From Botryllus schlosseri (taxonomy: Eukaryota), in the NCBI GenBank assembly GCA_051294905.1, contig CM119383.1:11160001-11224000 (forward strand): 64,000 nucleotides of DNA, read 5' to 3'. Shown one piece after another: positions 15,581-35,751 of this stretch (position 1 is the stretch's first letter; each line of letters begins with the position of its first letter). The position numbers and the translations under genes are program-made. The notes below the pieces were generated by a model that saw only the letters and a program-made list of their open reading frames with translations, did not search any database and was not told the origin of the DNA.

Positions 15581-18500
15581 CTACATTGTACCGTTTGCAC
15601 CTTCACTCGTACTCTCTGCCCGGTTGGGAAAAAGAAAAGTGTTGACATTCTGGAACTGTTCGAGAGTCAAATAGCCGTGGTTGTCTTCCAATTTCGTGCT
15701 TGAAGGCGACTGCTGCACCTCGTTCGTAACTCTGCCACCGTTACTACTCGACGCCGTGTCTTGCTCGCGCTCAGACACCGACGACCGATTACCTCTCGTC
15801 TTTCTCCCTTTGTCCGCCACGACGGGACGCGGCTGATTGCCCGCACCCAAACGTTTGACGCGTTTGCTGTGGGAGCCGCTCCGATTTTTGACGCTCTTAT
15901 CCTGCTTTTTGTGCCGCGGAGAAATCAAAAGAGGCCTGTAAGTCTGTGAACCGTCGGGTTGAATATCGTTTCTCTTCTCGACGTTAGCCATCAACGGGCT
16001 GGCCTCGTCGATACTGTCGCCGGGCTGTTTTTCATTTTGAACTTCGTCGTTGCTCGTGAGTGGATCATGAGCGTATTCACGTAACACGTTCAATTTGCGT
16101 TGCCTGGCCCGTTTCCTCTCTAACGCTTTCCTCACTTTCTGATACCTATCCACCAGAGCGCTGTTGTTGATTTTCGCTTGCGCGTGGTGCTGCATGATCA
16201 CCGGGATGGTGTGCATGTTGTTGAAGGCCAAATCGTCGAGACTGTGCTCGGTCATGCTCGATTCGTGAGCGTTACGCAGATTTGTCATTTTCGCCGGTTT
16301 TCCGTGGTCGTGACGGTGCGAAACGCAATGATTGTGAAAACTCATGTGGTGGTACGGCAATGAATCGGGATGGTAACCCCTCGGCTTGACACGACAACCT
16401 TCGTGAGGATATCGCTGGTGGGGATATTGTGAGTGCGTGGCAGAATCCATAATCCGCGACATTGACTCGTTACGAGAATACTGCTTCGCGCGGCTGCTAC
16501 GATGCAAAGATGTAGCAGAATCACGAATTCCGTGGTGAATAAGACAAGGATCAAAGTCGTCGCCGTTAACGTGGTGAGATCTTCCGTAACTGTCTACGTT
16601 ATGCCCTGCGCTTTCAGTGGATGGTAGCATAGTTTCGGAGGTCGGATCGGTCTTGATAGTGGGGTAAGCCCTGCCTCTTTTCCCGCCTGTCCGAAGCGAT
16701 TTATCGTTCGTCGAAGTCAGATTATCCAAGTTTGGATCGTCGGCGTTACCGCATTTTGAGAAGGAACTAACAGACCCGTCGTTTCCGTTGCCGATATCTT
16801 TAGAAATTCTTCGATTGAATAACTTCTTACACCGGCTTTTGAAAGATTTCCTCAGCACCAAGGACTGTAGAAGGACACATAAGCCGATTGCGATGACAAA
16901 TATCGCGTACAACCACGAGAAAACATTAACGATAAGGAGTTTTGTCGATCGTCCATCCTCCTTCATGTCAAAGTAGTAACAAGCTTCCTCCATATTGGCG
17001 CAAAATTGGTTCGAACGCATATCGGGAGCCGCAATAGACACGGCCGCAGACACCCAACTGAAGAGATACAGCACAAACAAAACCGCAGTACCGGTCAGCG
17101 CGCCTTTGAAGCTCTGTTCCGTCATTCTGGCACGGCACAGGGCATGGTGATGAGCGACAGGGCTGTCTGCTCGATTGTGACCCACAATTTCTGAACAGTT
17201 GCACGGCTCGTTAGTGAATATAGCTTGGTATCGGTTGTTCCCGTAGTGCTGACCATGGCTAGAATTTTGAGCAAGCGGCGATCTATTCGAGTCAAAATGA
17301 CGAGACTGCCGATTGAATATGCAAAGGACGCGTAGCAGAAAGAAAATGCAGAAAAGAGCGATGGCAGTAGCCGGCAAATAAAATGCATAGACGCTCGCCT
17401 CCCAAGGTAGCCAACAGTATTTGTCTCCCGGTTTGCAGTAATCATGTCCCTTTACCGCGGCAGTAATTCCACAAATCACCAATGGCATACCACACCCGAT
17501 CAGGTAATATCTCAGTATAGGTTTCCGTGGTTTTGGCTCTAACGAAGGCGGTTTCGTAAGTGCGAGAAGCTGTCTCAAAATACTTCTTACGCTAAGCGTG
17601 ATCCAGAACAGCACAGTCAGCGACGCGTAATGCAAGGAAAATCCATAAATTACGCAAACACCTTTTCGAGACACAAGTCGTATGCAGAAAGCAAACAAGC
17701 AAGTTGCCACCAACAAATGAAAACATATGTTTAACACCATATGCCGCGATTCTTTACTGATCATCAACTTATCCGCGCATGCCAAGTAACTAATGATCAC
17801 AACGAGAAGGCACACGGCCAGAACAAGAGTTCCTGTGATTACGGCTGGATGAGAGAATTCATACGCACAATTATCGAGACCACAAGACTCGTACTCACTG
17901 GCATAGACGAGGGTGACCGTTACCAGCTTGTGGCACACGACTTGTGTGTAATTCTGACTCATGCAATGAGCAGTACACGACTTGTCCCTCACCCAACCAT
18001 TTTTAGTCCACACAGCGGGATAACGGTTGCCACATTTTTTGGTGGCGATGTTGAAAACGACAGGATAGGATAGATTTTTCGATGAGCACCCCTCAATGCC
18101 CATTTGAAAAACCATTTCCGTAGCCACGGCATCATTAGTGGACATGTTGCCGACACTTTTGCCTTGTAGAAACAGACTAGCGTTCCTATATACGACAAAG
18201 TAGATTTTGTAATTTTCATTCGTCCCTTTGCAGTTATCGAGAGCGGTTACGGGAATTCGAAACGATGACGCTGACACGTAACGACCAAACGAAGGCATTC
18301 CGCATACAGCTTTCATAATCCCGTTATCTGTAACAATGCATGTCATCGCTGCAGTCAATTGAGGTTTTTCAGACACTTTCATCCCTCCAACCGCAATATT
18401 TTCCGATTCTGCATGAATCACACCAGTTGTAATCATTCGAAGGATGTAGCTTTCAATTAAATCCAACATTTCCCTGCAAAGATTAGACTTGGTCTGCGCC

Positions 18501-19963
18501 GTCTGTAGCATGGAAGCATCCGTCTTCATGAGGTAACCTGCTAGATTCAGTAGCGGCCAATCAGTAATATCCCCACTGACCGTATCATAACTCAGTCTTT
18601 GCCATGTTTCCGACATAAGTACACTGAGGAAGTCAAGCGTTAACTGTTCGCGAACAGGTAATCGAGATATCTTGTGCATTAAATTTTCAAGCATATCTTC
18701 CCTATTTTCGAAGAGGTTATGATCCTTTAAAATGTATTCGTGAATTTCATTTGTCACCTTATCTTTGAATGGGCAGTTCATGTAATTACCAACATGCCAT
18801 CCATGACGACCGCAAAAACGAGTGGCAAATTGTATATTACTGTATACTGCCCCGCTATGTTGCTGGCAGACGAGCTTTTTTGACAGACCTTCAACAGAAC
18901 TCGGCCACGTGAAGTCACCATGATGATTCACTACCTCGTTCTTTCTACAATACTGAGCATTCCTGCCAACCACTGCCAGCTTTATAGATTTGGTTACATT
19001 ACTATGAGGAGAAACGATGGTGCATTTCCAGTCGCCAGAATGATTTGATGTTACATTGCCGATGATCATCCAACCGGTAATAATTGATCTGTAGTGGTTT
19101 ACGCAAGTGTTTGAATGTAGCGACTTACTTCTGTTCGATAGATTTGCGTTATTAAAACTCCAATACAGCTGTGAGTTTGGAAGATTTGTACCCTCGCATT
19201 GGATGCGCATACTGTCTCCTTCAAATAGTAACTGTGGTTTCATCGGGCTGATTTCAAAATAGGGAAGTTTTGATAACCGATTTTGGGAGCCGCATTCCAA
19301 TTTGGGTGGATTCAGATTTTGCAGCCTTAACCCCGCTTTCGGTAGCTGGCATGTTCCGATTGCTTTCGGTGAGTTAGAATTCCTCAACCATACCACGAAG
19401 TCCCTCATTAAACAATTGCACACGAGATAAGTTGAGCGCAAATCAATTTTCCTCAACTGTCTTAAAGACTTGAATGCGTTGCCGGGTATGATAGGGAATT
19501 CGTTGAATGATAAATCCAAGTGTTTCAGCCTCAACAATCCATCGAACATGCCAGCGGTCAAATTACCGATACTGTTATGACTCAAGTCAAGACGCGTCAA
19601 ATTTGGAAATACAGAAAACGTTCCCGGAGAAATCTTCCAAATACCGTTACTTGAGAAATCTAGTTTGGTGATCCTTTGGAAATTACGCAAGTTGTCTTTT
19701 CTCGTGCCAAATGTCCCATTGCTCAACTCCTGTTCGTGGTTGTCGCTGAAGTCTATCCAAACCACATCATTCGGCAAAACAGCGCTCGATAAAAAATTGC
19801 TAACGTTGATTGAGCGGCAATACAGTCTTTTACCAGTAGTCCTTTTGACAGTTAGACAACCGCATGTCTTGAAAGATTGAAATGAACATCCCCGCGTTGA
19901 TGTCCAGTAAAGAGCAGCATGAAGAATAATACCGATTAGGAACATAATCCAAAGGTATTTCAT
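15581..19963 (-). CDS. ADGRA3: Adhesion GPCR of the ADGRA (GPR124/GPR125) family, ~1460 aa, intronless
   Basis: Signal peptide (MKYLWIMFLIGIILHAALYW), LRRs, LRRCT (YLVCNCLMRDFVVWL), Ig domain (WKCTIVSPH), HormR, GAIN/GPS, 7 TM helices, and tail motif KLNVLREYAHDPLTS matching ADGRA RLTVLREYAYDVPTS. The ATG at 19963 is preferred over the TTG at 19972. Single ADGRA-type orthologue; symbol is approximate. Confidence 0.9.
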   Translation of the reverse strand: MKYLWIMFLIGIILHAALYWTSTRGCSFQSFKTCGCLTVKRTTGKRLYCRSINVSNFLSSAVLPNDVVWIDFSDNHEQELSNGTFGTRKDNLRNFQRITKLDFSSNGIWKISPGTFSVFPNLTRLDLSHNSIGNLTAGMFDGLLRLKHLDLSFNEFPIIPGNAFKSLRQLRKIDLRSTYLVCNCLMRDFVVWLRNSNSPKAIGTCQLPKAGLRLQNLNPPKLECGSQNRLSKLPYFEISPMKPQLLFEGDSMRIQCEGTNLPNSQLYWSFNNANLSNRSKSLHSNTCVNHYRSIITGWMIIGNVTSNHSGDWKCTIVSPHSNVTKSIKLAVVGRNAQYCRKNEVVNHHGDFTWPSSVEGLSKKLVCQQHSGAVYSNIQFATRFCGRHGWHVGNYMNCPFKDKVTNEIHEYILKDHNLFENREDMLENLMHKISRLPVREQLTLDFLSVLMSETWQRLSYDTVSGDITDWPLLNLAGYLMKTDASMLQTAQTKSNLCREMLDLIESYILRMITTGVIHAESENIAVGGMKVSEKPQLTAAMTCIVTDNGIMKAVCGMPSFGRYVSASSFRIPVTALDNCKGTNENYKIYFVVYRNASLFLQGKSVGNMSTNDAVATEMVFQMGIEGCSSKNLSYPVVFNIATKKCGNRYPAVWTKNGWVRDKSCTAHCMSQNYTQVVCHKLVTVTLVYASEYESCGLDNCAYEFSHPAVITGTLVLAVCLLVVIISYLACADKLMISKESRHMVLNICFHLLVATCLFAFCIRLVSRKGVCVIYGFSLHYASLTVLFWITLSVRSILRQLLALTKPPSLEPKPRKPILRYYLIGCGMPLVICGITAAVKGHDYCKPGDKYCWLPWEASVYAFYLPATAIALFCIFFLLRVLCIFNRQSRHFDSNRSPLAQNSSHGQHYGNNRYQAIFTNEPCNCSEIVGHNRADSPVAHHHALCRARMTEQSFKGALTGTAVLFVLYLFSWVSAAVSIAAPDMRSNQFCANMEEACYYFDMKEDGRSTKLLIVNVFSWLYAIFVIAIGLCVLLQSLVLRKSFKSRCKKLFNRRISKDIGNGNDGSVSSFSKCGNADDPNLDNLTSTNDKSLRTGGKRGRAYPTIKTDPTSETMLPSTESAGHNVDSYGRSHHVNGDDFDPCLIHHGIRDSATSLHRSSRAKQYSRNESMSRIMDSATHSQYPHQRYPHEGCRVKPRGYHPDSLPYHHMSFHNHCVSHRHDHGKPAKMTNLRNAHESSMTEHSLDDLAFNNMHTIPVIMQHHAQAKINNSALVDRYQKVRKALERKRARQRKLNVLREYAHDPLTSNDEVQNEKQPGDSIDEASPLMANVEKRNDIQPDGSQTYRPLLISPRHKKQDKSVKNRSGSHSKRVKRLGAGNQPRPVVADKGRKTRGNRSSVSEREQDTASSSNGGRVTNEVQQSPSSTKLEDNHGYLTLEQFQNVNTFLFPNRAESTSEGANGTM

Positions 19964-20183
19964 TTTGAACAACTAGGTATCGCCATTTCTAATCTAATGC
20001 TTCATTGCAATAACGAAAATCACGAGCGACAGGTCTGTTGAATTCTTCACATAAAGGCACGAATAAAACTGTGAAACAGAACCAAAATATTATTCATACA
20101 TATATATAGAGATATAATTACAGATATAGTATAGGCCTACACAGTACGGCATGCGATACTTGATAAAATCAATTCTGTAAATG

Positions 20184-23990: not shown

Positions 23991-25125
23991 TTATAACAGG
24001 CAGTTATGGGAGTGACTTCGTGGTATCACAAGAGGGTTCATCGCTGCTGAATGTAAGCTCCACATACTAGAAGTATCGTCACCCTGTCCTCGTACGTGTT
24101 TGCTGGTGACCTTGCGCTCGTTGATTTCATCGACGATATCAAAAAACCTTTCCATGCTTCTAGTGAGGCTTTTGGACTGATCAGTATTTTTTTCGAACAC
24201 TGTCTCCTGGATATATGCAAGAAAACGTGAAATTTCTGTAATAGAGAAGAGCCGCTGATTTAATCACTATAGCCTACCTGTGAAAGAGATAAAGGTCGAC
24301 CGATTTCGGTATGCTCCTCGATGTTGATGACTGCTGGTGCTGGTCGTTCATCATCAAGAAATTTCCCAGCTTCCACCTCAGTTGGCTTGCTTGCCGGTGG
24401 TCCCCGTGTTCTTCCACAACAATAACCACTCAGATTCGTTGAGAAACAGGCTAGACCCAATGACGAAGTAACAGTCGAGATCATTTTCATCTCGAGAGTT
24501 CTGTTTTCCACTTCGGTGATGAAAAAAACGACGAAGGTGTTGGAAAAACACCAGCCGATGAAGAGCGCAGACAACAAATTAGGATAAACTCCTTGACACC
24601 GACGATACTGGGACAATACCCCGAAAATCTATAACAAATATTAAAGCATGTATATTACTGGAACGAATTCCAAAATAACAGCAGTACGGAACTTACCAAT
24701 ATAAATTCGAATGCCACAGTTGTAGCTATTAAAACAGCAGGAGCATATCCCTCAACATGAATCCATCGGTGAACAGGAGATAGATGCTTCAGATTCGTGG
24801 ATAAGACGAGAGTACGCAGCATAGCGAGGCATCCAATCAAGATAAGTCCCCCGACCCCACATATCCCCACTGTAAAGCCGTGGATGACTAATGCTACCTT
24901 AAACGGAAATATTTACAATTATTAACAGTTCAATGTACACTTGATGTAATCGCAGTAGTAACCCAAGTCAAATAACAAGCAGTTTACGCGCCTTATGACC
25001 AATAGTCTATCGTTATTGTTTAAAAATATATAGAAATGCAATATAATCTGTCTTACCCTCGTCTTGGTAACTCGCTGCAACAACAGAGCAACTGCTGGTC
25101 CGCTCGAATCACTCTTCTTCTGCAT
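23991..25125 (-). CDS. Uncharacterised 4-TM membrane protein, paralogue A (278 aa, 4 exons: 25125-25057, 24897-24697, 24628-24278, 24206-23991)
   Basis: All three introns are phase-0 GT-AG and the frame is open. Four hydrophobic segments. Exon positions and the tail motif (FFDIVDEINERK..KHVRGQGDDTSSMWSL..RSHSHNCLL) are shared with the paralogue at 34-35.6 kb. Confidence 0.82.
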
Positions 25126-25272
25126 TTTCAAAGATGTACGCTGCGAACAAGCATCACGGAATGAATAATGTCTTTTTTTTCTGAAATTGGTGATTTTGCA
25201 GTTACAAAATTCTTTATGACGTAACAATAAAAATGGAAACTGATTTGAGTTACTTGATAATATAGTGCTGTG

Positions 25273-25675
25273 TAGGGTTGGATTTAAAACAAACATTTTT
25301 AAAACAAGGCCCTTGTTTAAAACATGTTTTTATTGCTTCTTTAGCCATGACGTCATGAATATTCAATTGTGACGCAATAGTCGATTGACAGTGACAATTG
25401 AAGATATGGGGTATAGCTCATTTGACGAGATATCTCGGTACTATAGCTGTTGAACCGACTATTTTGTGGGTTCCAACCAGCATGCCATGTATCGTATACG
25501 TCGGCTATAAATCGGGTAAGTAATTGTCCGTATAGGCTCATACAGCATGTTTTTTTGGAAAGCATTTACACAATCATGGCATGATTTTACAACCTAAAAA
25601 GACACAATTTTTTTCAAATTGCCTTTGTTTAAAACACTGTGTTTTAAACAGCAATTTGTTTCAAAGGCAACCCTA
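25273..25675. mobile_element. ~400-bp MITE, TIR TAGGGTTG/CAACCCTA
   Basis: TIRs plus flanking direct repeat TAGTGCTGTG/TAGTGTTGTG (9/10). Confidence 0.55.
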
Positions 25676-26098
25676 TAGTGTTGTGTGTAACTAACTTTTA
25701 TAGTAACTGCCTGGTATTCATACTCATACAATAGGCTATATCGGTTTCAACTTTCAACACTTATCAAAGTTATCACCAATAATGATAAATGTCGGTTGCA
25801 TGGAATTATATCTCCATATGGATTCAATATTTTAGTTTAACTTGCCATAATTTCGGTTATTTGGAGTTGCCGTTCAAAATCGCCTTGTACAATGAGATAT
25901 TACAATTTACGTGAATATAAGGTTTACTAGGGTTACCAGCATACGTCCTCTTTTAAAAGGATTTGTCCTCTATTTTGTCTTTTTCGAAAGTGTGTCCTCG
26001 GAGGACGCCCAAATCAGTAGCGTAGCAGCCACTTGGCGGTTCTGGCTCTGCGCCAGGGGCGACAGGCTCCAAGGGGGCGGCAAAATGAGGCTGCACAG

Positions 26099-26325
26099 TG
26101 AGAGAGAGAGAGAGAGATGGTATTCTTTTTCGCCTGCACCACCGAGATGCTTTGACGACGGAGATGCGATACGTACTTTATAGTAAGGTCATCTAGTCTG
26201 CACCCCCGTTTTTTCTCCTCCGTGATTGCTGAGTGCCTATAGCGGGATAACCGCGGATACCAGTTTTCGAGTATTCGGTCTGACCCGGTCGGGGATCGAA
26301 CCCACGACCGCACTGATTCCGAAAA
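26099..26325 (-). mobile_element. 5'-truncated tRNA-derived SINE with (CT)n tail
   Basis: Pol III B-box GGTTCGATCC at 26302-26293 in tRNA-like context, no A-box; microsatellite tail at 26099-26117. Confidence 0.6.
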
Positions 26326-26666
26326 CACGAATTAATATGTTAACATGACGATGGAACCACTCCGAAATATCCGTCAAGGCCGATTGTTCGGAGAGTTCGC
26401 AGAAAAAGGAGAATGCCTGGTGAAAAATCAGAAGACACTGTCCTCAGTGTTGTTGAAGAAGTTAGACGATGCATGTTTCAAGCTTTGGATAGATTTAAAA
26501 ACTTGAAGCTGAAACTAGGTTTACCGGCATACACCACTTAAATGATATGTTTGGAATTTTGAATGCACACGCGCTGCTGCAAAGCAAAAGTCACAATTTA
26601 TTCACCAGCGCTTTTAGAAGCACTTATGACGACGAGGTGGACTTTTTGGAATTACCTGTGTTATAG

Positions 26667-27035
26667 CAGGGGTTCTCAACCTTTTTTTAGACACTCCCCC
26701 TTTATGATAGTGAAAAATTTTGTGGCCCCTTATTGTCATATCACAAATCCAACCGGGATGCTAAAGTGAAAAATTTTGCGGCCCCTTATTGTCATATCAC
26801 AAATCCAACCGGGATGCTAACAACCCCAACATATTGTTTGATGGCTCGGAAGGTCATGACTGTTGATGAGAGAATTCAAATTAATGAAATTTGGTCTATA
26901 TATAGAGAAACACGCGTGAATCGGAGGTAAATCGCGGAGAGCGCGAATAAAATTCAGTTGACCGCTTCGTCGCACCCTCCTTTAGATGCTCTCACCCTCC
27001 CAAAGGGGGCGCGCCCTCCAAGTTGAGAACCACTG
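26667..27035. mobile_element. hAT (Charlie-like) MITE inserted into the transposase remnant
   Basis: TIR CAGGGGTTCTCAAC / GTTGAGAACCACTG; degenerate TSD (TGTTATAG/CCTTATAC); internal ~54-bp tandem duplication at 26709-26820. Confidence 0.75.
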
Positions 27036-28386
27036 CCTTATACCTTCGAATTAGGGATCATATAAATCATAAGATTGCTAGCTTTTCGTACAAACGAATA
27101 TGAGGCCTCCAGGACGAACACAAATTAAGATATAACCATATGAAGTTGTTCAACTTGAGCGGAGCAGCGAAACCACATTTGATCGTAGTGCAACAGCGTT
27201 TGATGTTTTACAGTGTTTAGTTAATGCAAAGCTACTGGATTCGACACCATAGTTATGCTCGTGCCTGAAACTTTATCTGACTATTGGTGTTTCAATTGCG
27301 AGCTGTGTGAGGAGCTTCTCAAAGCTCAAACTGATTAAGACTTATTTTCGTTCTACCATGAATGATGATCGGCTATCAGCTTTATCCATTCTGTCTATAG
27401 AAAGAGACTACGTTCAAAAAGTTGAATTTGAGGATATTATCGCTGATTTTGCTTTAAGGCGGCTATTGATTTTCTATTTGCACAATACATTCGTTTTTAT
27501 TATTTTTGGCCTTATTAACATTGAGTCGGTGAGGGTGAGACGCGGCATATTATTTGTAATTATTTTTATTGACAATATTGCCTGAACATGAATCTTATGT
27601 CGAAATTTCCTGCGGGCGGCATTTTAAGCGAGAGCCAGGGGCGGCAGCACATGCTGCTACGCCAGTGGCCCAAATGTCCTCTTTTTTTGAGATTTTATCC
27701 TCTTTTTTGAGAAATACAGTAGGCCTAAATAAGCACTGAAGGAACGCTCCGGTGGCTATTTCGGGAGCTGGGCCCGAACGTTGAACTTTTTTCTTATTTT
27801 TTTCTTAGTCAACCAACTAATAATGTGAAGGAAAAACTGTATTTTGAGAGCTGAGCCAGAAAGTTGACCTTTTCATTTTTAGTCAACCGACCACGTAGTG
27901 TAAAAATTTTACCATTTTTTTTAGGAGTCTTCTTCGGTATTGCAAGTCTGAAAATTTTGAAAAGTGTCCCTTTTTCACAGTTTGAAATATGGTAACCCTA
28001 GATCATTACGCCTGAAGTCAAATTCGAGTCATCTACTTTTATATTCGAATTACCTGGTTGGATATCATGGATTCAAAACGTCGACCAACAAGTATTATTC
28101 GAGTCGATTTTGAATCAGTGTTAGTTATTGACGTAAACATCAGACATTTATTGTTAGGCCAAACATAAAATTTGACTGGAGGTGACGATAATATGACCTG
28201 TAAAGGCCTTTGTTACTCGTCACCTCATTGGCCAATCCTTAAATTAATCATCCAAGAGCTTATAAGTGTTCGTCGAGCATAATAACGCGAGGCAGCTGAT
28301 CGGGCCTATAGTTAAATGCATGTGTATATCGCCACAGCCTATACTACGATATGTAGGCCTGCTTATATGATTACTTAGGTCTATGC

Positions 28387-29126
28387 CAGGGACGGGCAAC
28401 ATACGGTCCGCGGGTCGGATCCGGCCCGCGGACAGTTTCCCATCTTATATGATAATGTGGCCCGCGGCCCGAGTCTGCGAAGATTCCCCACTATACTTGC
28501 TCAAATTTTAGTGACTGCATGTTATTATATACGTGTGTGCGCAGCGTGCGAGGGTGGAGCGTAAGTTCGTCGAAGCGAGAAGGCTTGCATTATCATAATT
28601 TACGATGAACCCAACCCTAATGAATTGATACCTTGCTAAATTTGTGATACCGGGCGATGTTCCATATAATTTTACACAAGTCTGCGCGCACTCACCAACT
28701 CACTTCGCGGTCCCATGGACAACAGTGCGTAACAAGTAAAAATAGGGTCATCACTTCGGCTTTTTGTGCACAGCTCAAATTTTCTATGCGCAGAGACCGT
28801 GTCAGCCGCGTAATTGCGCAAGCGCGCAACTTATATAGAGGGCTTATCGAGCGCCTTGAAATCTTTATCAAGGATTGCACCGTGTGTTAATTAATCGGAG
28901 ACGCCTGTGTGACAATGCTGTTCTCAATCCACGTTGCCTTCGTCATTATCAGCGAGAAATGGCTTTGAAGTGACTTTGCTGCCGTTAAAATACATTCATC
29001 AAATACGATTTATTCGTTGTATTTGTAGATAAATGGGTGAATAATGTATCAATTCAGCAATCAGGCCCGCCAAGTACCTAATTTTCCTATATCCGGCCCG
29101 CCGTCTGGAGAAGTTGCCCGCCCCTG
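28387..29126. mobile_element. hAT (Charlie-like) non-autonomous element, 740 bp
   Basis: TIR CAGGGACGGGCAAC / GTTGCCCGCCCCTG; GGCCCGC subterminal motifs; TSD GTCTATGC/GTCTGTGT (6/8). Confidence 0.75.
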
Positions 29127-29389
29127 GTCTGTGTACTAATAGTATGTCTACATTTATGCTGGAAAATATTATTTTGCTTCCATATCGACTTTCCATCTCG
29201 GCTACTGACATAATGTATTCGCATGCGTAATGACCCGACCACCCAAACGCGATGATTCCTACATTCCAGGTAATATGATACGAAATATGTATTATGCACG
29301 AAGACGGCGCTATATGCAGACATCCCGCATAAATATACAAAGTACAATTGGACATACGAATGAAAATATAAAAGAAAATAAGTATAAAG

Positions 29390-31093
29390 CAGTGGTTCCC
29401 AACCTTTTTCGGTGTCGGGGCCAAATTTAAAATTCCAGAGTACGGTCGGGGCCGCACAAATACCAGGGCAATGAAACGGACCCAAAATAGTCATCAAAAT
29501 ATGAAAATTGGCATTGTTCTGATCAATCGCTCGAGGCCATTGGCCATTGTTAAGTTCTTTGTGTTGCTGCGCTCCCATTGTTCAGAACAATCGACCTTTG
29601 GTGGCTATTTCGGAGCAGTTTTATTGCCCTGGCGAGATTTCAATTCGTATTTTTAGAATCAGTACGACAGTAGCTTTCAAATTATTCGGACACTCCGGTC
29701 GTGAGCTGTAGGACTACCAATTATGCTACTTTCGGGGCCGTTTAGTGAGTGAGCTTTTATTGCCTAAACGCGCGAAGCGCGAAAATTTTCTGTAATTCAT
29801 AATTGAATCAGTCAACATGATCGGTAATTGCATGTATATTGCTATCAAGTTTTATCCTCTCTCTGCTCACGTAATCAGTTTTACAGGTAGAGCCGAGGGA
29901 GGTGTGTTTGAAAAGGTAAGACCCCTCAATAATAATTTAACATCTCCGGGCGTATATCCGTTGGCAGGAACAAAAAGGCACTTCGTGAGCCTCCCTCCCC
30001 AAAAAAACCTTTGGTCTTGGGCTCCCATAGGGTGAAAAACCTACCCCTACCACCTTGTTCGCTTTTACCACAAAATTAGCGGTACCGTTAAGTGAGCCAG
30101 CGCGAGGCGCGAAATTTTCGATAATTTATGATAAAATCGATCAATATTATTGGGAATTGCATATTGCTATAAATTTCTTGTCCTCGCTGCTCACGTAATC
30201 ATATTTACCGGTAGAGCTAAGTGAGGTGTCTTGGACACTGCAGAACCCGTTGGTATGACCCCGTAATATGATATTATTTCGTAACCTGCTGTCTGCTATA
30301 TCAAAAAATATAGAATAACCCAAACGTATGCTACTAAACTAAGAGGCGCGCACTATTTCAAATTGGTATTTCTTCACTGGAATATAATTTTTCCCTGCGG
30401 CATGCTATGTGTCTTGTGTGGCTCAGATTTCCAAGACAGTATTTTGTATATATAACGAAGCTTCGGTCAGCATAAGGGCACTCCTTTTTGGCCAAGGTTT
30501 TCTCGCTGCCAATCTTTCTGACACACTTCTTGGAGTCGCATGTTACATGGCGTAAAACTTAATATGTCTTGGTGCGTCGTGGCGCGGTAATGACAAACGC
30601 CGATACGACCATTTCGATAAATATATTTTTTGGGGGGATGAGTACCCAAAAGTCAAGATATTGGGCAGCTTGGCAGCATGAAATGATGCCTAGAGTAAAA
30701 AGATGCACAAATTTTCAAAAAATACTCTATAATTTATACTTATTCACGAAATAATTTTGAGCCCCCTTCGAGCTCGCCCCCCCCCCCCCAATAGGAGGGT
30801 GTGTCGTGCCGCAGTTATGGTCCTGTCTATACCTATATCTATAGCAATTGCTCGTTCAACTGGAAAGTTAGGGCACATTGCAGTGAAACAGCAGCGACGT
30901 AACGTTAGTAGTCTACTTACGACTATCCTGCAATCCTAATTAAAAACTTCAGACTCCAAGCCAAGTACGTGCATTTCATAAATGTAAAATTTTATTTTTG
31001 GTCAATACTCGATTTCTTAATATTTTGTGGGGGCCGCAAGAAGGCTATCTGCGGGCCGCATGCGGCCCTCAGGGCCGCGGTTGGGAATCACTG
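29390..31093. mobile_element. hAT non-autonomous element, 1704 bp, perfect TSD GTATAAAG
   Basis: TIR CAGTGGTTCCCAACC / GGTTGGGAATCACTG; TSD at 29382-29389 and 31094-31101; empty site in the duplicate unit near 34083; internal direct repeat ~29740-29920 vs ~30085-30245. Confidence 0.88.
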
Positions 31094-31116
31094 GTATAAA
31101 GGCTATATAACAGCCT

Positions 31117-32288
31117 TCAAATCAGTCTCATTTCAAGACACCTGGAGTATAGGCAATCATGCGATTGACTCTTTCTGACAGGGCTTGCTGGCGCCAGTGC
31201 CTCTTTTATTCGGTTTATTGTGCTCTCGTCAATTTATTCATCGATGAGGCTCAGGAACTTCTCGACTCTATCATTCAACATTTTTGTCTCTTCCAGATTT
31301 CTTTCGAATACTGAAACCTAGACAGGAAGCGGAATCTTTATGACGCGTACTCGCAGCGATTTACTGATTTCTAGACTGACCTCAGGAGCCGATACGGGAT
31401 AGTAGTCTTGCCAGATTTTGCGCATTCTGGCGAGAGTCTTTTCCTCGCCCAGGTATTTATGCTTCCATTCAGCCTGATTCCTGACATTGTGTTTGGTCAG
31501 ACTCCACCAATAGCGTGTAACGTTAGCGAGGATGTGGACAACCCATAAGACACAGTGAAGATCGACACGAGTTTTACCGCCGGGGTTCTGTTCTCCGATC
31601 CGATTAGGTAAAACACCATAAAGGCGCTCGATAAACACCATCCGACGAAGAGCCCGCTCGAGTAAGTATGCCATGTTTGCCAACGCTCGAGAAATACGCT
31701 GAGAAACCCTAAAATCTGTAGAAAGCGAGATAATATAATATTTTGTGACACTCCATACTATATTTTAAACATTTGTTACCAATAGAACCTCGAAAACGAA
31801 GGTGGTGACTATGATAGCACCGTTTGTGTGGTAATCCATTTCCGCAATGGAAACTCCTTCAGGAATCAGCGGGATAAGCAATTCATCCAGCGCGCCCAGA
31901 TAGAATAGTATGGGTAACGCAAATCCAATGGCGACGCAAATAATAGTCGTGTGCATGAAGAACGCTTTCTGCAAGGTATAATACAGAGCAGCGATGAATC
32001 TCGTATTCCATGAAGAATCTACATTGTATATATATATAAATATATCCATATGCCGCGCCGGTATAAGTTTCTATATCTGTAACACTTTCTCCACGTAGTT
32101 ACAGGGTATGACCTTGCCCACACGCATTAATTGTAATGACGCATTTTTGTGATATCAATGTATAATGGGTATGCGATAATAAATAGAGCAATGTGCGACG
32201 AATAATATTTTCTTACCCTCCGTTTCCTTTGTAGCGATTCTGATATGTTCAGATGTTCGTTTCAATCCATTTTCTTCCGCAATTTCAT
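31117..32288 (-). pseudogene. Pseudogene of the 4-TM family (paralogue B; exons 32288-32217, 31968-31780, 31715-31381, from 31317)
   Basis: Relative to paralogue C: TTA>TGA at codon 9 (32264-32262); 1-bp deletion at ~31540 (exon 3 is 335 nt); in-frame TAA insertion at 31236-31234; loss of the KHVRG...MWSL motif. Confidence 0.85.
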
Positions 32289-33268
32289 TGACTATAGCGT
32301 CGAGAATGGGCATCAGAGAATGAATAGGATCGATTTTTTGCTGGATTTGTTATTAAGGAATTACAATCGCATATTGTGACGTCATACTTGACATTCCATC
32401 GAAAGCCAGCGGATATGCAGAGTGTCAAACAGGATAAAATGGTTGTCTGTCGCTCGGTCGGAGATGGCAGTTGGAGGCGTGTTGGCCATGTTTCAATGAT
32501 TGTGATTCTGAAATTATATTCTACACGCGTAACACCAGACTGCAGTAGTATAACCAAAGTCGAATCGCACAGTAAAGCAACACTTTGCCTCGACTCGGAC
32601 GTAATAAACTGCATTTTCTTGCTAGCAGCACTTCTAGTGATGGCTCTCGAAATCGAATTCCAAGGTGATTCGGTTCCGAGTCGACTATCAAGCTACGAAT
32701 CGAGTATTCGCGTATCACCTATTGTTATACGTCATATACTAATCGCCATAATTTTGAATGTGCACCGCTTTAAGAGCACAAGGAAAGTAATGTCTGTTAC
32801 ACGTCATCCAAAATAATTTTGCATTTCTTGACTATTTCATTGCGCTTTTGAATCGGGCTGCGTATCGATCACCAGTTTAGCTCAAAGAAATACCGTTTAC
32901 TGGATTCGAAGGTGGCTATATACGCAGGGTTCATATTCGGGGTTTACGCATAATGACAATAAAGACTGCAAATACGTGCAATTTTCGAATATACATTCAG
33001 CTACCGTGATATTAGGAGCATTTAGGCAGTCGTTATGCCATAATATAACTCCTAAACTGCTATCTATACTTTGACAAAATCCTGAGCGTGAATACAAGTA
33101 GTTTTACCAACAAAATAAATAGAAGTGGAAGTAATCTAAAGGAGTGGACATTACTTGGGTAAAGACCGGAAGTAGGCAAAAGTACTCCGAAGAAGTGGAA
33201 GTAGGCTACTTTGTTACTGAAGACCTAATCCGGAGAAATTATAGATGACGGGGCATATGGTTAATGCA

Positions 33269-33677
33269 TTGTGGTCTATCAAGTATACATGCCGGACCCC
33301 AACTGTGGAACAGCATCTCGCCAGCTATCCGACAGTCGTCGAGCATGTCCGGCGTCCGCATGCAAGTCGAATTACAAGCAATTTCCTCTCAATGAATAGC
33401 GTACTAGTCAGCCTTCAGGATTACCGGACCACGACCAAACATCGATCTCGCCTTCCGCCGCATGCCACCTCATTTTGTCACTTGCCTTTTATATTCTCTG
33501 CTTTACTTTTCATTCAGTGTCCATGGCTTTTCTTTACTTCGCCTAGGCCAAGATGGATGTCTGATCTCAGACTACTCCACGTCGTTTCGACACCTTCCTA
33601 TCTTTTCATCGCAGTTTTGTGGTGTTTTGAAATGATGACAATGTTAATAAAACTGATTGATTGATTGCACATTTTAT
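33269..33677. mobile_element. Unclassified ~410-bp interspersed element; inverted relative at ~38580-38870
   Basis: Absent from the duplicate unit at ~36985; flanked by TAATGCA direct repeat; ends near a (TGAT)3 tail; its core ~33275-33570 aligns to the reverse complement of a MED12 intron segment. Confidence 0.55.
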
Positions 33678-34120
33678 AATGCATATTTCCCTAACATGTT
33701 GTGTACTGAATTACCAAGTCAATCTCCGGTATTTAATCATTTCAATAATACTCAAATTTCGAAAAGTTTCGCAGCGTATACGTACGTATAAGTGCATAAT
33801 TACTTCGGTCTCAGCATGTAAACATTTAGGTTGGAAATATCATTCTGCTTCCATATCGGTTTTCTGTGTCATCAATCCCAAAATATTGTTGATATAGTGT
33901 ATTCTCACACGTAATGACCTAACCACAAACCACCCAAACTCGATGCTTCCGGCATTCAAGTCAATATGATACGAGATATGTATTATACACTGAAGTGGCG
34001 CTATGCCGACATTCCGCACTGAAGCCGTGCTTAATTATGTAAAATACAATTGGACATTCGCATGAAACTATAAAAGAAAATGAGTAAAGACTGTACAACA
34101 GTCATCAAAACCCTCCCGGT

Positions 34121-35631
34121 TCAACACATGCTGCCGTGGAATAGGCAATCCTGCGAATGACTCTTTCTGATAACGACAGGGCTCGCTGGCACCTGCAAGC
34201 TCCACATGCTTGATGTCCTGTCGCCCATTCCGCGGACATGTTTTATTCTGTTCATTTTCCTCTCGTCAATTTCGTCGACTAGGTTCAGGAATTTATTGAC
34301 TTTTTCAGTCAACTTTTTTGTCTCTTCCAGATTTCTTTCGAAGACTGAAACCTAGCAACGATATGGGTTTCATTTTAGATTGTTTCACGTACTCGCGGCG
34401 AATCGCTGATTTTTAGACTGACCTCGGGAGCCGATACATAGTCTTCCCGGTATTTGCGCGTTCTAGCGAGTGATTTTTCCTCGGCCAGGTACTTTCGCCT
34501 CAACTCAGCCTGCTTCCAGACATTGTGTTTGGCCCGACTCCACCAGTATCGTGTGGCGTTAGCGAGTATGTGGACGAGCCCATAAGATACATTAAAGATT
34601 GACACGAGTTTTACGGCAGGGGCTCTGTTCTCTGATTCGATGAGGTAGAACACTATAAAGGCGCTCGATAAGCACCATCCGACGAAGAGCCCACTCGCGT
34701 AAGTATGCCATGTTCGCCCACGTTCAAGAAATACGCTAAAGAATCCTAAAATCTGTAGAAAGTAAGATCATATAATATTTTGCGACATTCCATATACTAT
34801 TTCAAACATTGCTTACCAATAGAACCTCGAAAACGAAGGTGGTGACTATGATAGCACCATCATTAGCATAGTAATCCATTTCCGTTGCGGAAACTTCGTC
34901 AATCAGCGGGAGAAGCAATTCATCCAGTGCTCCGAGATAAAATAGCACGAGTAACGCAAATCCAACGGCGGCGCAAATAATAGTCGCTATAGTGTGCATG
35001 AGGAATGCTGTCTGCAAGGTACAGAGCAGCCATGAGTCCACATTGAAGATATATATATCCTTACCGCGCCAGTATAAGTTTCTATATCTCAACAGTTCTC
35101 CACATAGTTATAGGTAGTGGTGGCTTTTGGGGTGCGCGAGGTGGGCGGTCGCCCGCCCCCCCCCCCCTGGTCGAAGGGCCCCCCTCTTTGGTTTTACCGC
35201 TTTTTTCAAAGGTTGTGGCGAATAGAAGTGGAAATCCTTGTACCAATCAAGAAAACGATTCCGTCCATATGAGTAAATCATCAAATCTCCGCATTTGTTA
35301 TTAAGTCCAATATGACGACAATCATGAAGTCTCCGCATGCCTGTTAAGCTGGTAGGCGAAGCCCCCCAGATGCCGCGATTACATACTTATAGCCCCCGGA
35401 AGTCTCGCCCAGGGCCCCCAATCGTAGGGCCACCACTGGTTACAGGGTATGCCCATTGCCCACACGCATTGCTCGTAATGACGCATTTTTGTGATATCGA
35501 TATTTAGTAAATAATGCGATAATAAACAGAGCAATGTGTGATAATAAATATTTTCTTACTCTCTGCTTCCTTTGTAGCGATTCTGTTACATTCAGATGTT
35601 CGTTTAAATCCATTTTCTTCCGCATATCCAT
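34121..35631 (-). CDS. Uncharacterised 4-TM membrane protein, paralogue C (275 aa, 4 exons: 35631-35560, 35011-34817, 34752-34423, 34351-34121)
   Basis: Phase-0 GT-AG introns and open frame MDMRKKMDLNEH...RKQR|TAFLMHTIATIICAAVGFALLVLFYLG...EVLL|ILGFFSVFLERGRTWHTYASGLFVGWCLSSAFIVFY...APE|VSVFERN...RKSHSQDCLFHGSMC. Intron 3 is 71 nt, as in paralogue A. Confidence 0.85.
35115..35438. mobile_element. hAT-type MITE (same family as 21622-21996) in intron 1 of paralogue C
   Basis: TIR TAGTGGTGGC/GCCACCACTG; TSD GTTATAGG/GTTACAGG; single GTTACAGG at the homologous site 32098-32105. Confidence 0.85.
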
Positions 35632-35751
35632 TGACTATGGCATCAGAGAATCTGTGATACAGATTTTATCTGGATTTGTTATTAGGGAATTACAACTCCA
35701 TATTGTGACGCCATAGTTGACATTTCATCGATCGAGTCAGTGCATATGCAG

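Follow-up and report, generated by a model that had tools for sequence, protein, structure and literature searches.

The window, i.e. the whole stretch of 64,000 nucleotides analysed, carries on its minus strand three four-exon loci, here named A, B and C, located between the MED12 gene and an ADGRA-like receptor gene. The exon boundaries are identical across the three loci, and all introns of A and C, as modelled, have GT-AG borders, with all junctions in phase 0. The genes and their flanks are as follows.

15581-19972: ORF with LRR-Ig-7tm_2 domain content (ADGRA-like flank)
23991..25125, minus strand: gene A, 278 aa (translation, GT-AG phase-0 junctions, homology to C in all four exons)
25125-25057, 24897-24697, 24628-24278, 24206-23991 (stop included), minus strand: exons of A, separated by introns of 159, 68 and 71 bases
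31117..32288 (lower end approximate), minus strand: gene B (alignment to C)
32288-32217, 31968-31780, 31715-31381, 31317 to about 31117, minus strand: exons of B
34121..35631, minus strand: gene C, 275 aa (gene model, RNA reads X12, spliced contigs X1)
35631-35560, 35011-34817, 34752-34423, 34351-34121 (stop included), minus strand: exons of C, separated by introns of 548, 64 and 71 bases
about 61090 to past the window end: MED12 exons (other flank)

Both the position of the three loci and the identity of the two flanks agree with the preliminary description, as the exon coordinates, the GT-AG phase-0 junctions, the LRR-Ig-7tm_2 ORF and the MED12 exons were all recovered. Exon searches of the 495-Mb genome found the family at these three loci only. 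With C exon 3 as query, exon 3 of A was retrieved at an E-value of 2.9e-8 and, beyond B, nothing else. As this search yields A, and as the RNA uses the predicted junctions of C, the family match is not due to chance. Of the ADGRA orthologues of three other assemblies, two are on contigs that have no upstream DNA, so they offer no neighbouring orthologue locus to read.

Transcription, decay and selection

A check for spliced transcripts, set beforehand, was positive for C (three introns) and for B (intron 3). In C, the junctions 34351/34423, 34752/34817 and 35011/35560 are used exactly as predicted in the X12 RNA reads and in the X1 spliced contigs, with 29, 8 and 19 X12 reads backing the three introns. 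On the 3' side of C, loose read ends close in an A run just beyond position 33999, which suggests a poly(A) site approximately 120-150 bases past the stop codon. In B, intron 3 (31318-31380) is removed by splicing in one X1 contig.

Alignment of B to C reveals three lesions in the reference sequence.

32262..32264, minus strand: lesion 1, TGA in place of the TTA of C, at codon 9 of exon 1
31540..31542, minus strand: lesion 2, one base of exon 3 missing, causing a frameshift in the reference
31234..31236, minus strand: lesion 3, in-frame three-base insertion in exon 4, reading TAA

In addition, a 39-base in-frame deletion removes from B a conserved motif of the tail. Two of the three lesions, the frameshift and the in-frame TAA, are lacking in other datasets. 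At lesion 2, X1, X5 and X12 contain an additional base behind 31541, so that G-L-V-H is read as in C. At lesion 3, the three letters are missing from the X5 contig, and the loose end of an X1 contig reads across without them. B had been described beforehand as a young dead copy of C. That it is a copy with lesions in the reference stands, whereas neither its youth nor its death is clear: about 15% of the exon bases differ between B and C, dS is 0.34, and the locus is transcribed and spliced. As B is transcribed, spliced and diverged, and as two of its lesions are missing elsewhere, it is a copy of C that is decaying or polymorphically inactivated, broken in the reference and apparently open in other individuals. 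B may thus be a segregating pseudogene, which would make it useful for the study of gene death.

A and C share 37% identity and their silent sites are saturated. The earlier view that they are old, strongly diverged and both intact under purifying selection is upheld by a pN of 0.41, well below the pS of 0.74. Together with the dN/dS of 0.34 between B and C, these values indicate that purifying selection acts on the family. The low pN relative to pS also weighs against a reading of the loci as non-functional, i.e. as transcribed relics or chance open frames. Such a reading could draw on the broken state of B in the reference, on the bulk RNA run X8, which has no reads on C, and on the public collection, from which annotated A and C proteins are absent. 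However, the four exons have kept their phase and their GT-AG borders despite the saturated silent sites, splice support is exact, with a likely poly(A) end, and for a relative in another assembly the identity amounts to 76% in frame but just 59% out of frame. We therefore consider the non-functional reading extremely improbable and already close to refuted.

Membrane core and predicted cytosolic tail

According to hydropathy, A and C each comprise four hydrophobic segments connected by short loops and followed by a hydrophilic tail of about 117 residues (115-119). The motifs FEF/FEV in TM2, GWC in TM3 and E-x-ENR after TM3 are present in both, and the helices, motifs and long tail reported in the preliminary description were thus found again. 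Basic residues occur at the N-terminal end, in loop 2 and along the tail, as would be expected if both termini were inside. The outward loops of A and C are short and contain neither cysteine pairs nor a common glycosylation site, so they would leave little surface for ligand binding or cell-cell contact. Within the helices, a glutamate of TM2 is conserved, as are T-T, G-W-C and S/N, and no arginine ladder is present in TM4. Beyond TM4, C continues with a helical, basic stretch and A with a proline-rich one. Given this difference, A and C may not work alike.

Conservation is highest in the distal tail, with 54% identity between A and C, versus 31% for each membrane exon. It contains two conserved elements.

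34250..34345, minus strand: conserved amphipathic helix of C, at the start of exon 4 (AF2 model and hydrophobic moment)
34196..34243, minus strand: conserved tail motif of C, K-H-V-R-G-x-G-D-x-T-S-S-M-W-S-L (14 of the 16 residues identical in A)
24054..24101, minus strand: counterpart of this motif in A (A/C alignment)

In the AF2 model of the tail piece, a helix extends over residues 3-41, with block-mean pLDDT values of 92-97 in the first 30 residues. Its hydrophobic face comprises L, V/M, F, V and I, spaced every 3-4 residues, and the peak of the helical hydrophobic moment coincides in position between A and C. The tail motif of C falls mostly in the low-confidence region that follows, where block means are 44-70 past residue 30 and below 50 from residue 47. 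This arrangement, a confidently predicted helix and, behind it, a low-confidence stretch containing the conserved motif, is typical of a docking motif. Self-association of two copies of the tail scored 0.02, against a mark of 0.32, a value that speaks neither for nor against such an association.

Based on these features, we tentatively propose a family of tetraspan proteins, restricted to this lineage, that act through their tail as scaffolds or accessory proteins, with A and C working, B decaying, and all three genes having arisen by local duplication. The channel, junction or receptor-accessory role suggested in the preliminary description is purely conjectural. Both protein ends would be cytosolic, and the four helices would be tightly packed, with loops of 10 to about 22 residues, the glutamate of TM2 buried and G-W-C in TM3. 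Behind TM4 would come a variable linker, then the conserved amphipathic helix, about 30 residues long, and, distal to it, the conserved low-confidence stretch, which is rich in serine and basic residues. The membrane core would act as an anchor, probably pairing the protein with a second copy of itself or with a different membrane protein, while the tail helix and the linear motif would dock a cytosolic partner, probably under the control of phosphorylation. The protein would therefore be a scaffold or an accessory subunit, rather than an enzyme or a ligand receptor. We counted in favour of this tail-based reading that B, a copy gathering disabling lesions, has lost exactly the tail motif; we counted against it that a charged conserved residue within the membrane would be equally at home in a pore.

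A homo-oligomeric pore or channel subunit would indeed make use of the same residues: the TM2 glutamate and the polar residues of TM3 would line the pore, and the tail helix, which is conserved, amphipathic and heptad-like in its hydrophobic face, would join the subunits. The conserved T-T, G-W-C and S/N within the helices are also consistent with such a role. Nevertheless, the exon pieces show no Pfam resemblance to the Orai, CALHM, connexin, innexin or Hv1 profiles, and the missing arginine ladder in TM4 argues in the same direction, which makes a pore quite improbable in our view.

Searches for relatives

That no named family is recognised, as first noticed on reading the sequence, was borne out by exon-wise searches of Pfam, of PDB sequences, of 1.84 billion proteins and of the genome itself. 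The database queries were single exons, which reduces sensitivity, whereas a full-length alignment of A, B and C was used for hhalign. In hmmscan searches of Pfam-A with exons 2, 3 and 4 of A and C (E-value up to 10), only chance-level matches were obtained, the best with an E-value of 0.022, and none of the six exon pieces reached a family at an E-value of 0.01 or at the gathering score. A profile of exon 3 (A and C) against 1.84 billion representatives retrieved one repeat artefact and P0001, an unspliced ORF from a raw assembly, which is the sole partial relative; the search restarted from P0001 matched P0001 only. The exon 4 tail profile found nothing in a 5.8-billion collection, in which the search covers proteins of 42-134 aa only, and only noise was obtained when PDB sequences were searched with the profiles of exons 3 and 4. 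Scores in the language-model atlas were 0.86 or less, i.e. leads below the 0.9 mark; one of these leads, DUF4728 (PF15860; 0.84 and 0.78), was rejected because the family profile matches nothing at these loci. The fold search with a model of exon 3 alone yielded generic, unspecific helical-hairpin matches, and literature searches gave no match.

From these exon-wise searches, in databases that barely cover the lineage, we suggest that the family may be lineage-specific. A and C could instead be strongly diverged members of a known four-helix family, such as MARVEL/MAL-like proteins, MS4A-like proteins or an unnamed TMEM, lying beyond the reach of sequence searches. The lineage is fast-diverging and thinly sampled, as illustrated by the ADGRA-like neighbour, whose closest relatives are just 48-51% identical and come without exception from raw assemblies; the cost of exon-by-exon searching and the MAL-type F-E-F and G-W-V motifs would also be compatible with such an origin. 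In contrast, the Pfam and PDB searches were blank, all language-model scores stayed below 0.9, the MAL-like motifs are in TM2/TM3 rather than TM1/TM2, and hhalign gave a probability of 0.1% against the genome's own five single-exon MARVEL genes (shallow alignments of 3 and 5 sequences) and of 0.1% against its Mpv17 genes. Membership in a known family thus appears rather doubtful, although a known fold or family for the full-length protein could still emerge. This alternative concerns ancestry and is compatible with a scaffold mechanism.

If the family is truly without relatives, it would be a clean case of a family of membrane proteins that arose, or became unrecognisable by divergence, within one animal lineage. 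The cluster combines two old genes that are still intact with a third in the process of decay, and the short motif conserved in the tail gives experiments an immediate point of entry. A more far-reaching reading, which we consider unlikely, is that A and C form an undescribed tetraspan family of one invertebrate chordate lineage with a new fold arrangement or role (pore, junction component), and that the tail motif connects this family to cytosolic machinery with which no known tetraspan interacts. Unassigned small membrane protein families are common in fast-evolving animal genomes, and the finding is modest in this respect, its functional part being deduced from sequence and modelling.

Comparison with known tetraspan families

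With their four close helices, predicted cytosolic ends and short outer loops, A and C resemble the MARVEL proteins (MAL, plasmolipin, CMTM, synaptogyrin, occludin), which have a functional cytosolic tail and are scaffolds rather than enzymes. MAL proteins exhibit F-E-F and G-W-V (G-W) motifs in successive helices, TM1 and TM2; the shifted position of the similar motifs in A and C would invert the topology. The MARVEL profile (PF01284) was rejected, since it matched no exon piece and the loci are absent from its 20 genome matches (E-value up to 10).

The Mpv17/PMP22 family (PF04117) also has four helices, and its W...F...R spacing is one residue off in C exon 3. This exon matches the family weakly over TM3-TM4 (E-value of 0.022, 15.2 bits), whereas A has no match. 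The assignment was rejected, as the score is below the 27-bit cut-off and the loci are absent from the Mpv17 matches of the genome. Mpv17 proteins, unlike A and C, have no long tail.

Connexins resemble A and C in length (about 280 aa), in their four helices and cytosolic tail, and in their place beside MED12, near which GJB1 lies in human. However, connexins have three conserved cysteines in each outer loop, whereas loops 1 and 3 of A and C contain none. As there was also no connexin match in Pfam, this candidate was rejected.

Finally, A, B and C resemble the taxonomically restricted ('orphan') families of fast-evolving invertebrates, which are a class rather than a family, in their few tandem copies, their lack of detectable relatives, and their birth-and-death evolution with one decaying copy. 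Among these orphan families, A and C stand out by their clear membrane architecture and their strongly conserved tail motif.

Gene structure, neighbourhood and transcription

The loci A, B and C share one four-exon plan on the minus strand, and they lie in the order MED12, C, B, A, ADGRA-like receptor and KIAA1328-like open reading frame, all on that strand. In the intact genes A and C, all introns are GT-AG, all junctions fall between codons, and introns 2 and 3 comprise only 64-71 bases, lengths that would fit a sea squirt genome.

Gene models and neighbours
~61090 to past the window end (continuing to G000:C13:11231015), minus: MED12, LCEWAV-domain exons
35631-35560, 35011-34817, 34752-34423, 34351-34121, minus: gene C, four exons, 275 aa
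25125-25057, 24897-24697, 24628-24278, 24206-23991, minus: gene A, four exons, 278 aa
15581-19972, minus: ADGRA-like LRR-Ig-7tm_2 adhesion receptor, single-exon, 1463 aa
13015-14286, minus: KIAA1328-like protein, single-exon, 423 aa

MED12 runs off the high end, with only its 3' part inside the window. The ADGRA and KIAA1328 genes are likewise neighbours in two further assemblies: L011 and the contig of P0004, the ADGRA orthologue from raw assembly SRR25569784.

Exon 3 of C matched only B and A in the 495-Mb genome (A at E 2.9e-8), and profiles of exons 3 and 4 recovered the same three loci and nothing further. The three-locus family exceeds chance; its genes are real and constrained, and transcription was seen for B and C, the only loci at which the RNA runs were compared. 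In the bulk RNA run X12, the C junctions 34351/34423, 34752/34817 and 35011/35560 are crossed by 19, 8 and 29 reads, respectively. The reads over 35011/35560 exhibit three changed letters and fit an allele encoding R-K in place of R-T. Splicing at these three positions recurs in contigs of the 2015 run X1. No read of the bulk run X8 falls on C, which is therefore not expressed ubiquitously. A poly(A) site for C, ~120-150 bases past the stop, is suggested by loose ends with a terminal A run just beyond 33999.

The stretches 33278-33733 and 35102-35253 reach word depths of ~10^5 in run X5, with many loose ends, and are therefore very high-copy interspersed repeats; the latter lies inside a ~260-base part of C intron 1 that is absent from B intron 1. 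A perfect TGACGTCA palindrome (CRE-like site) is located ~220 bases upstream of the ATG of A (25348-25355) and another ~90 bases upstream of that of B (32377-32384), and C exhibits TGGCGTCA at the corresponding place (about 35712-35719). The three perfect copies of TGACGTCA in the window are not significant alone (12/100 shuffles).

Status of the B copy

B was previously described as a young dead copy of C, and the reference does carry three disabling lesions.

Lesions of B relative to C
32264-32262, minus: TGA at codon 9
next to 31541, minus: one-base deletion in exon 3
31236-31234, minus: inserted in-frame TAA

In addition, an in-frame 39-base deletion takes out the conserved tail motif, and the C-terminal end is changed. 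Nevertheless, B is not especially young. It differs from C at ~15% of exon bases, with 44 synonymous differences over 162 sites and 61 non-synonymous differences over 573 sites (dS 0.34, dN 0.115); the resulting ratio of 0.34 indicates that B was constrained for much of its life. Moreover, three runs (X1, X5 and X12) have an additional base at 31541, which brings exon 3 back into frame, and the three letters at 31234 are left out of an X5 contig and of an X1 contig that reads over the site. Of the three disabling lesions, two are thus private to the reference, reflecting either an allele or an assembly error. Intron 3 of B is spliced out in an X1 contig. The most fitting description of B is a copy that is decaying or polymorphically inactivated and has lost the tail motif.

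Upstream of the start codon (32289-32313 in B, 35632-35650 in C), B has 13 bases more than C, which open an upstream ATG in another frame that runs through exon 1, giving an overlapping upstream open reading frame. X12 RNA reads hold a similar insertion at the position of C (loose end at 35638).

Against chromosomal order, 24 X12 reads link exon 2 of B (31780) to exon 3 of C (34752). B and C agree exactly over the final 42 bases of exon 2, so mapping ambiguity explains part of this joint. At least one joint read, however, has 65 letters on either side, which points to B/C mosaic alleles in some other animals, through gene conversion or copy-number variants, with back-splicing as a possible alternative source.

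Constraint, topology and probable role

A and C are 37% identical (98/265 aligned residues), with saturated synonymous differences (pS 0.74) and a pN of 0.41. The persistence of two intact four-exon frames after such divergence implies long purifying selection. Conservation is uneven, reaching 54% in exon 4 versus 31% in each membrane exon. The exon 4 AF2 model exhibits a helix over residues 3-41 (block-mean pLDDT 92-97 for about the first 30), whose hydrophobic face is conserved, with the peak hydrophobic moment at a matching position in A and C. The remainder is of low confidence and holds most of the near-invariant motif K-H-V-R-G-x-G-D-x-T-S-S-M-W-S-L, which is followed by a second conserved block, P-[LV]-V-I-x-[KR]-S-H-S-x-x-C-L. 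As both A and C exhibit a basic residue three places ahead of the second serine of S-H-S, control via the serine-rich motif is likely. In C, TM4 is modelled as extending into a long basic helix, whereas A exhibits prolines in the matching stretch; the linker after TM4 is therefore not conserved.

Hydropathy places the four hydrophobic segments of A at residues ~24-52, 74-96, 107-128 and 139-159, with a first loop of ~21 residues and second and third loops of 10 each, and the hydrophilic tail of A and C comprises 115-119 residues. The motifs quoted in the preliminary description were all found: F-E-F/V in TM2, G-W-C in TM3 and E-x-E-N-R after TM3. As basic residues occur at the N-terminal end, in loop 2 and in the tail, both ends are probably cytosolic. 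The helices may form a compact core with a buried glutamate. Extracellular exposure would be very small; A and C exhibit neither loop cysteines nor a shared glycosylation site. The strongest constraint falls on the helix and linear motif of the tail, both predicted to be cytosolic. This topology, core and constraint pattern suggest a membrane scaffold or accessory subunit docking a cytosolic partner. The main mechanistic rival is a pore, in place of such a scaffold.

Relatives and family assignment

All database searches for relatives of A and C used single exons rather than the spliced protein. Against Pfam, the best of six exon pieces reached E 0.022; PDB sequence searches gave no match, language-model neighbours all scored below 0.9, and in a fold search the exon 3 model retrieved generic hairpins only. 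The full-length A/B/C alignment (X at the break of B) was compared with the Mpv17 and MARVEL genes of this genome, with an hhalign probability of 0.1% for each.

Among 1.84 billion representative proteins, the exon 3 profile found one repeat artefact and one relative, P0001, an unspliced open reading frame from SRR25569784. Its identity to C is 76% in frame but drops to 59% when exon 2 is read in the wrong frame, a pattern that marks a coding relative. No further relatives emerged when P0001 or the tail profile served as the query. P0001 also exhibits intron-level similarity to C, whereas P0004, from the same run, is only 49% identical to the ADGRA-like receptor of the window; either the run is a mixture of organisms, or the four-helix gene has been conserved much more strongly than the receptor next to it.

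The neighbouring receptor, the sole orthologue in this genome, has its closest relatives at 48-51% identity and in raw assemblies only, which indicates that the lineage is poorly covered by databases. Prokaryote-style calls of open reading frames on raw eukaryotic contigs catch exons by luck only. Given this coverage, these calls and the single-exon queries, the blank searches mean less than is apparent. That annotated proteomes contain no match is genuine evidence against a close relative in well-studied animals, but not against a remote one. A, B and C constitute a real, apparently lineage-restricted tetraspan family without family assignment, an ordinary type of finding for a fast-evolving genome.
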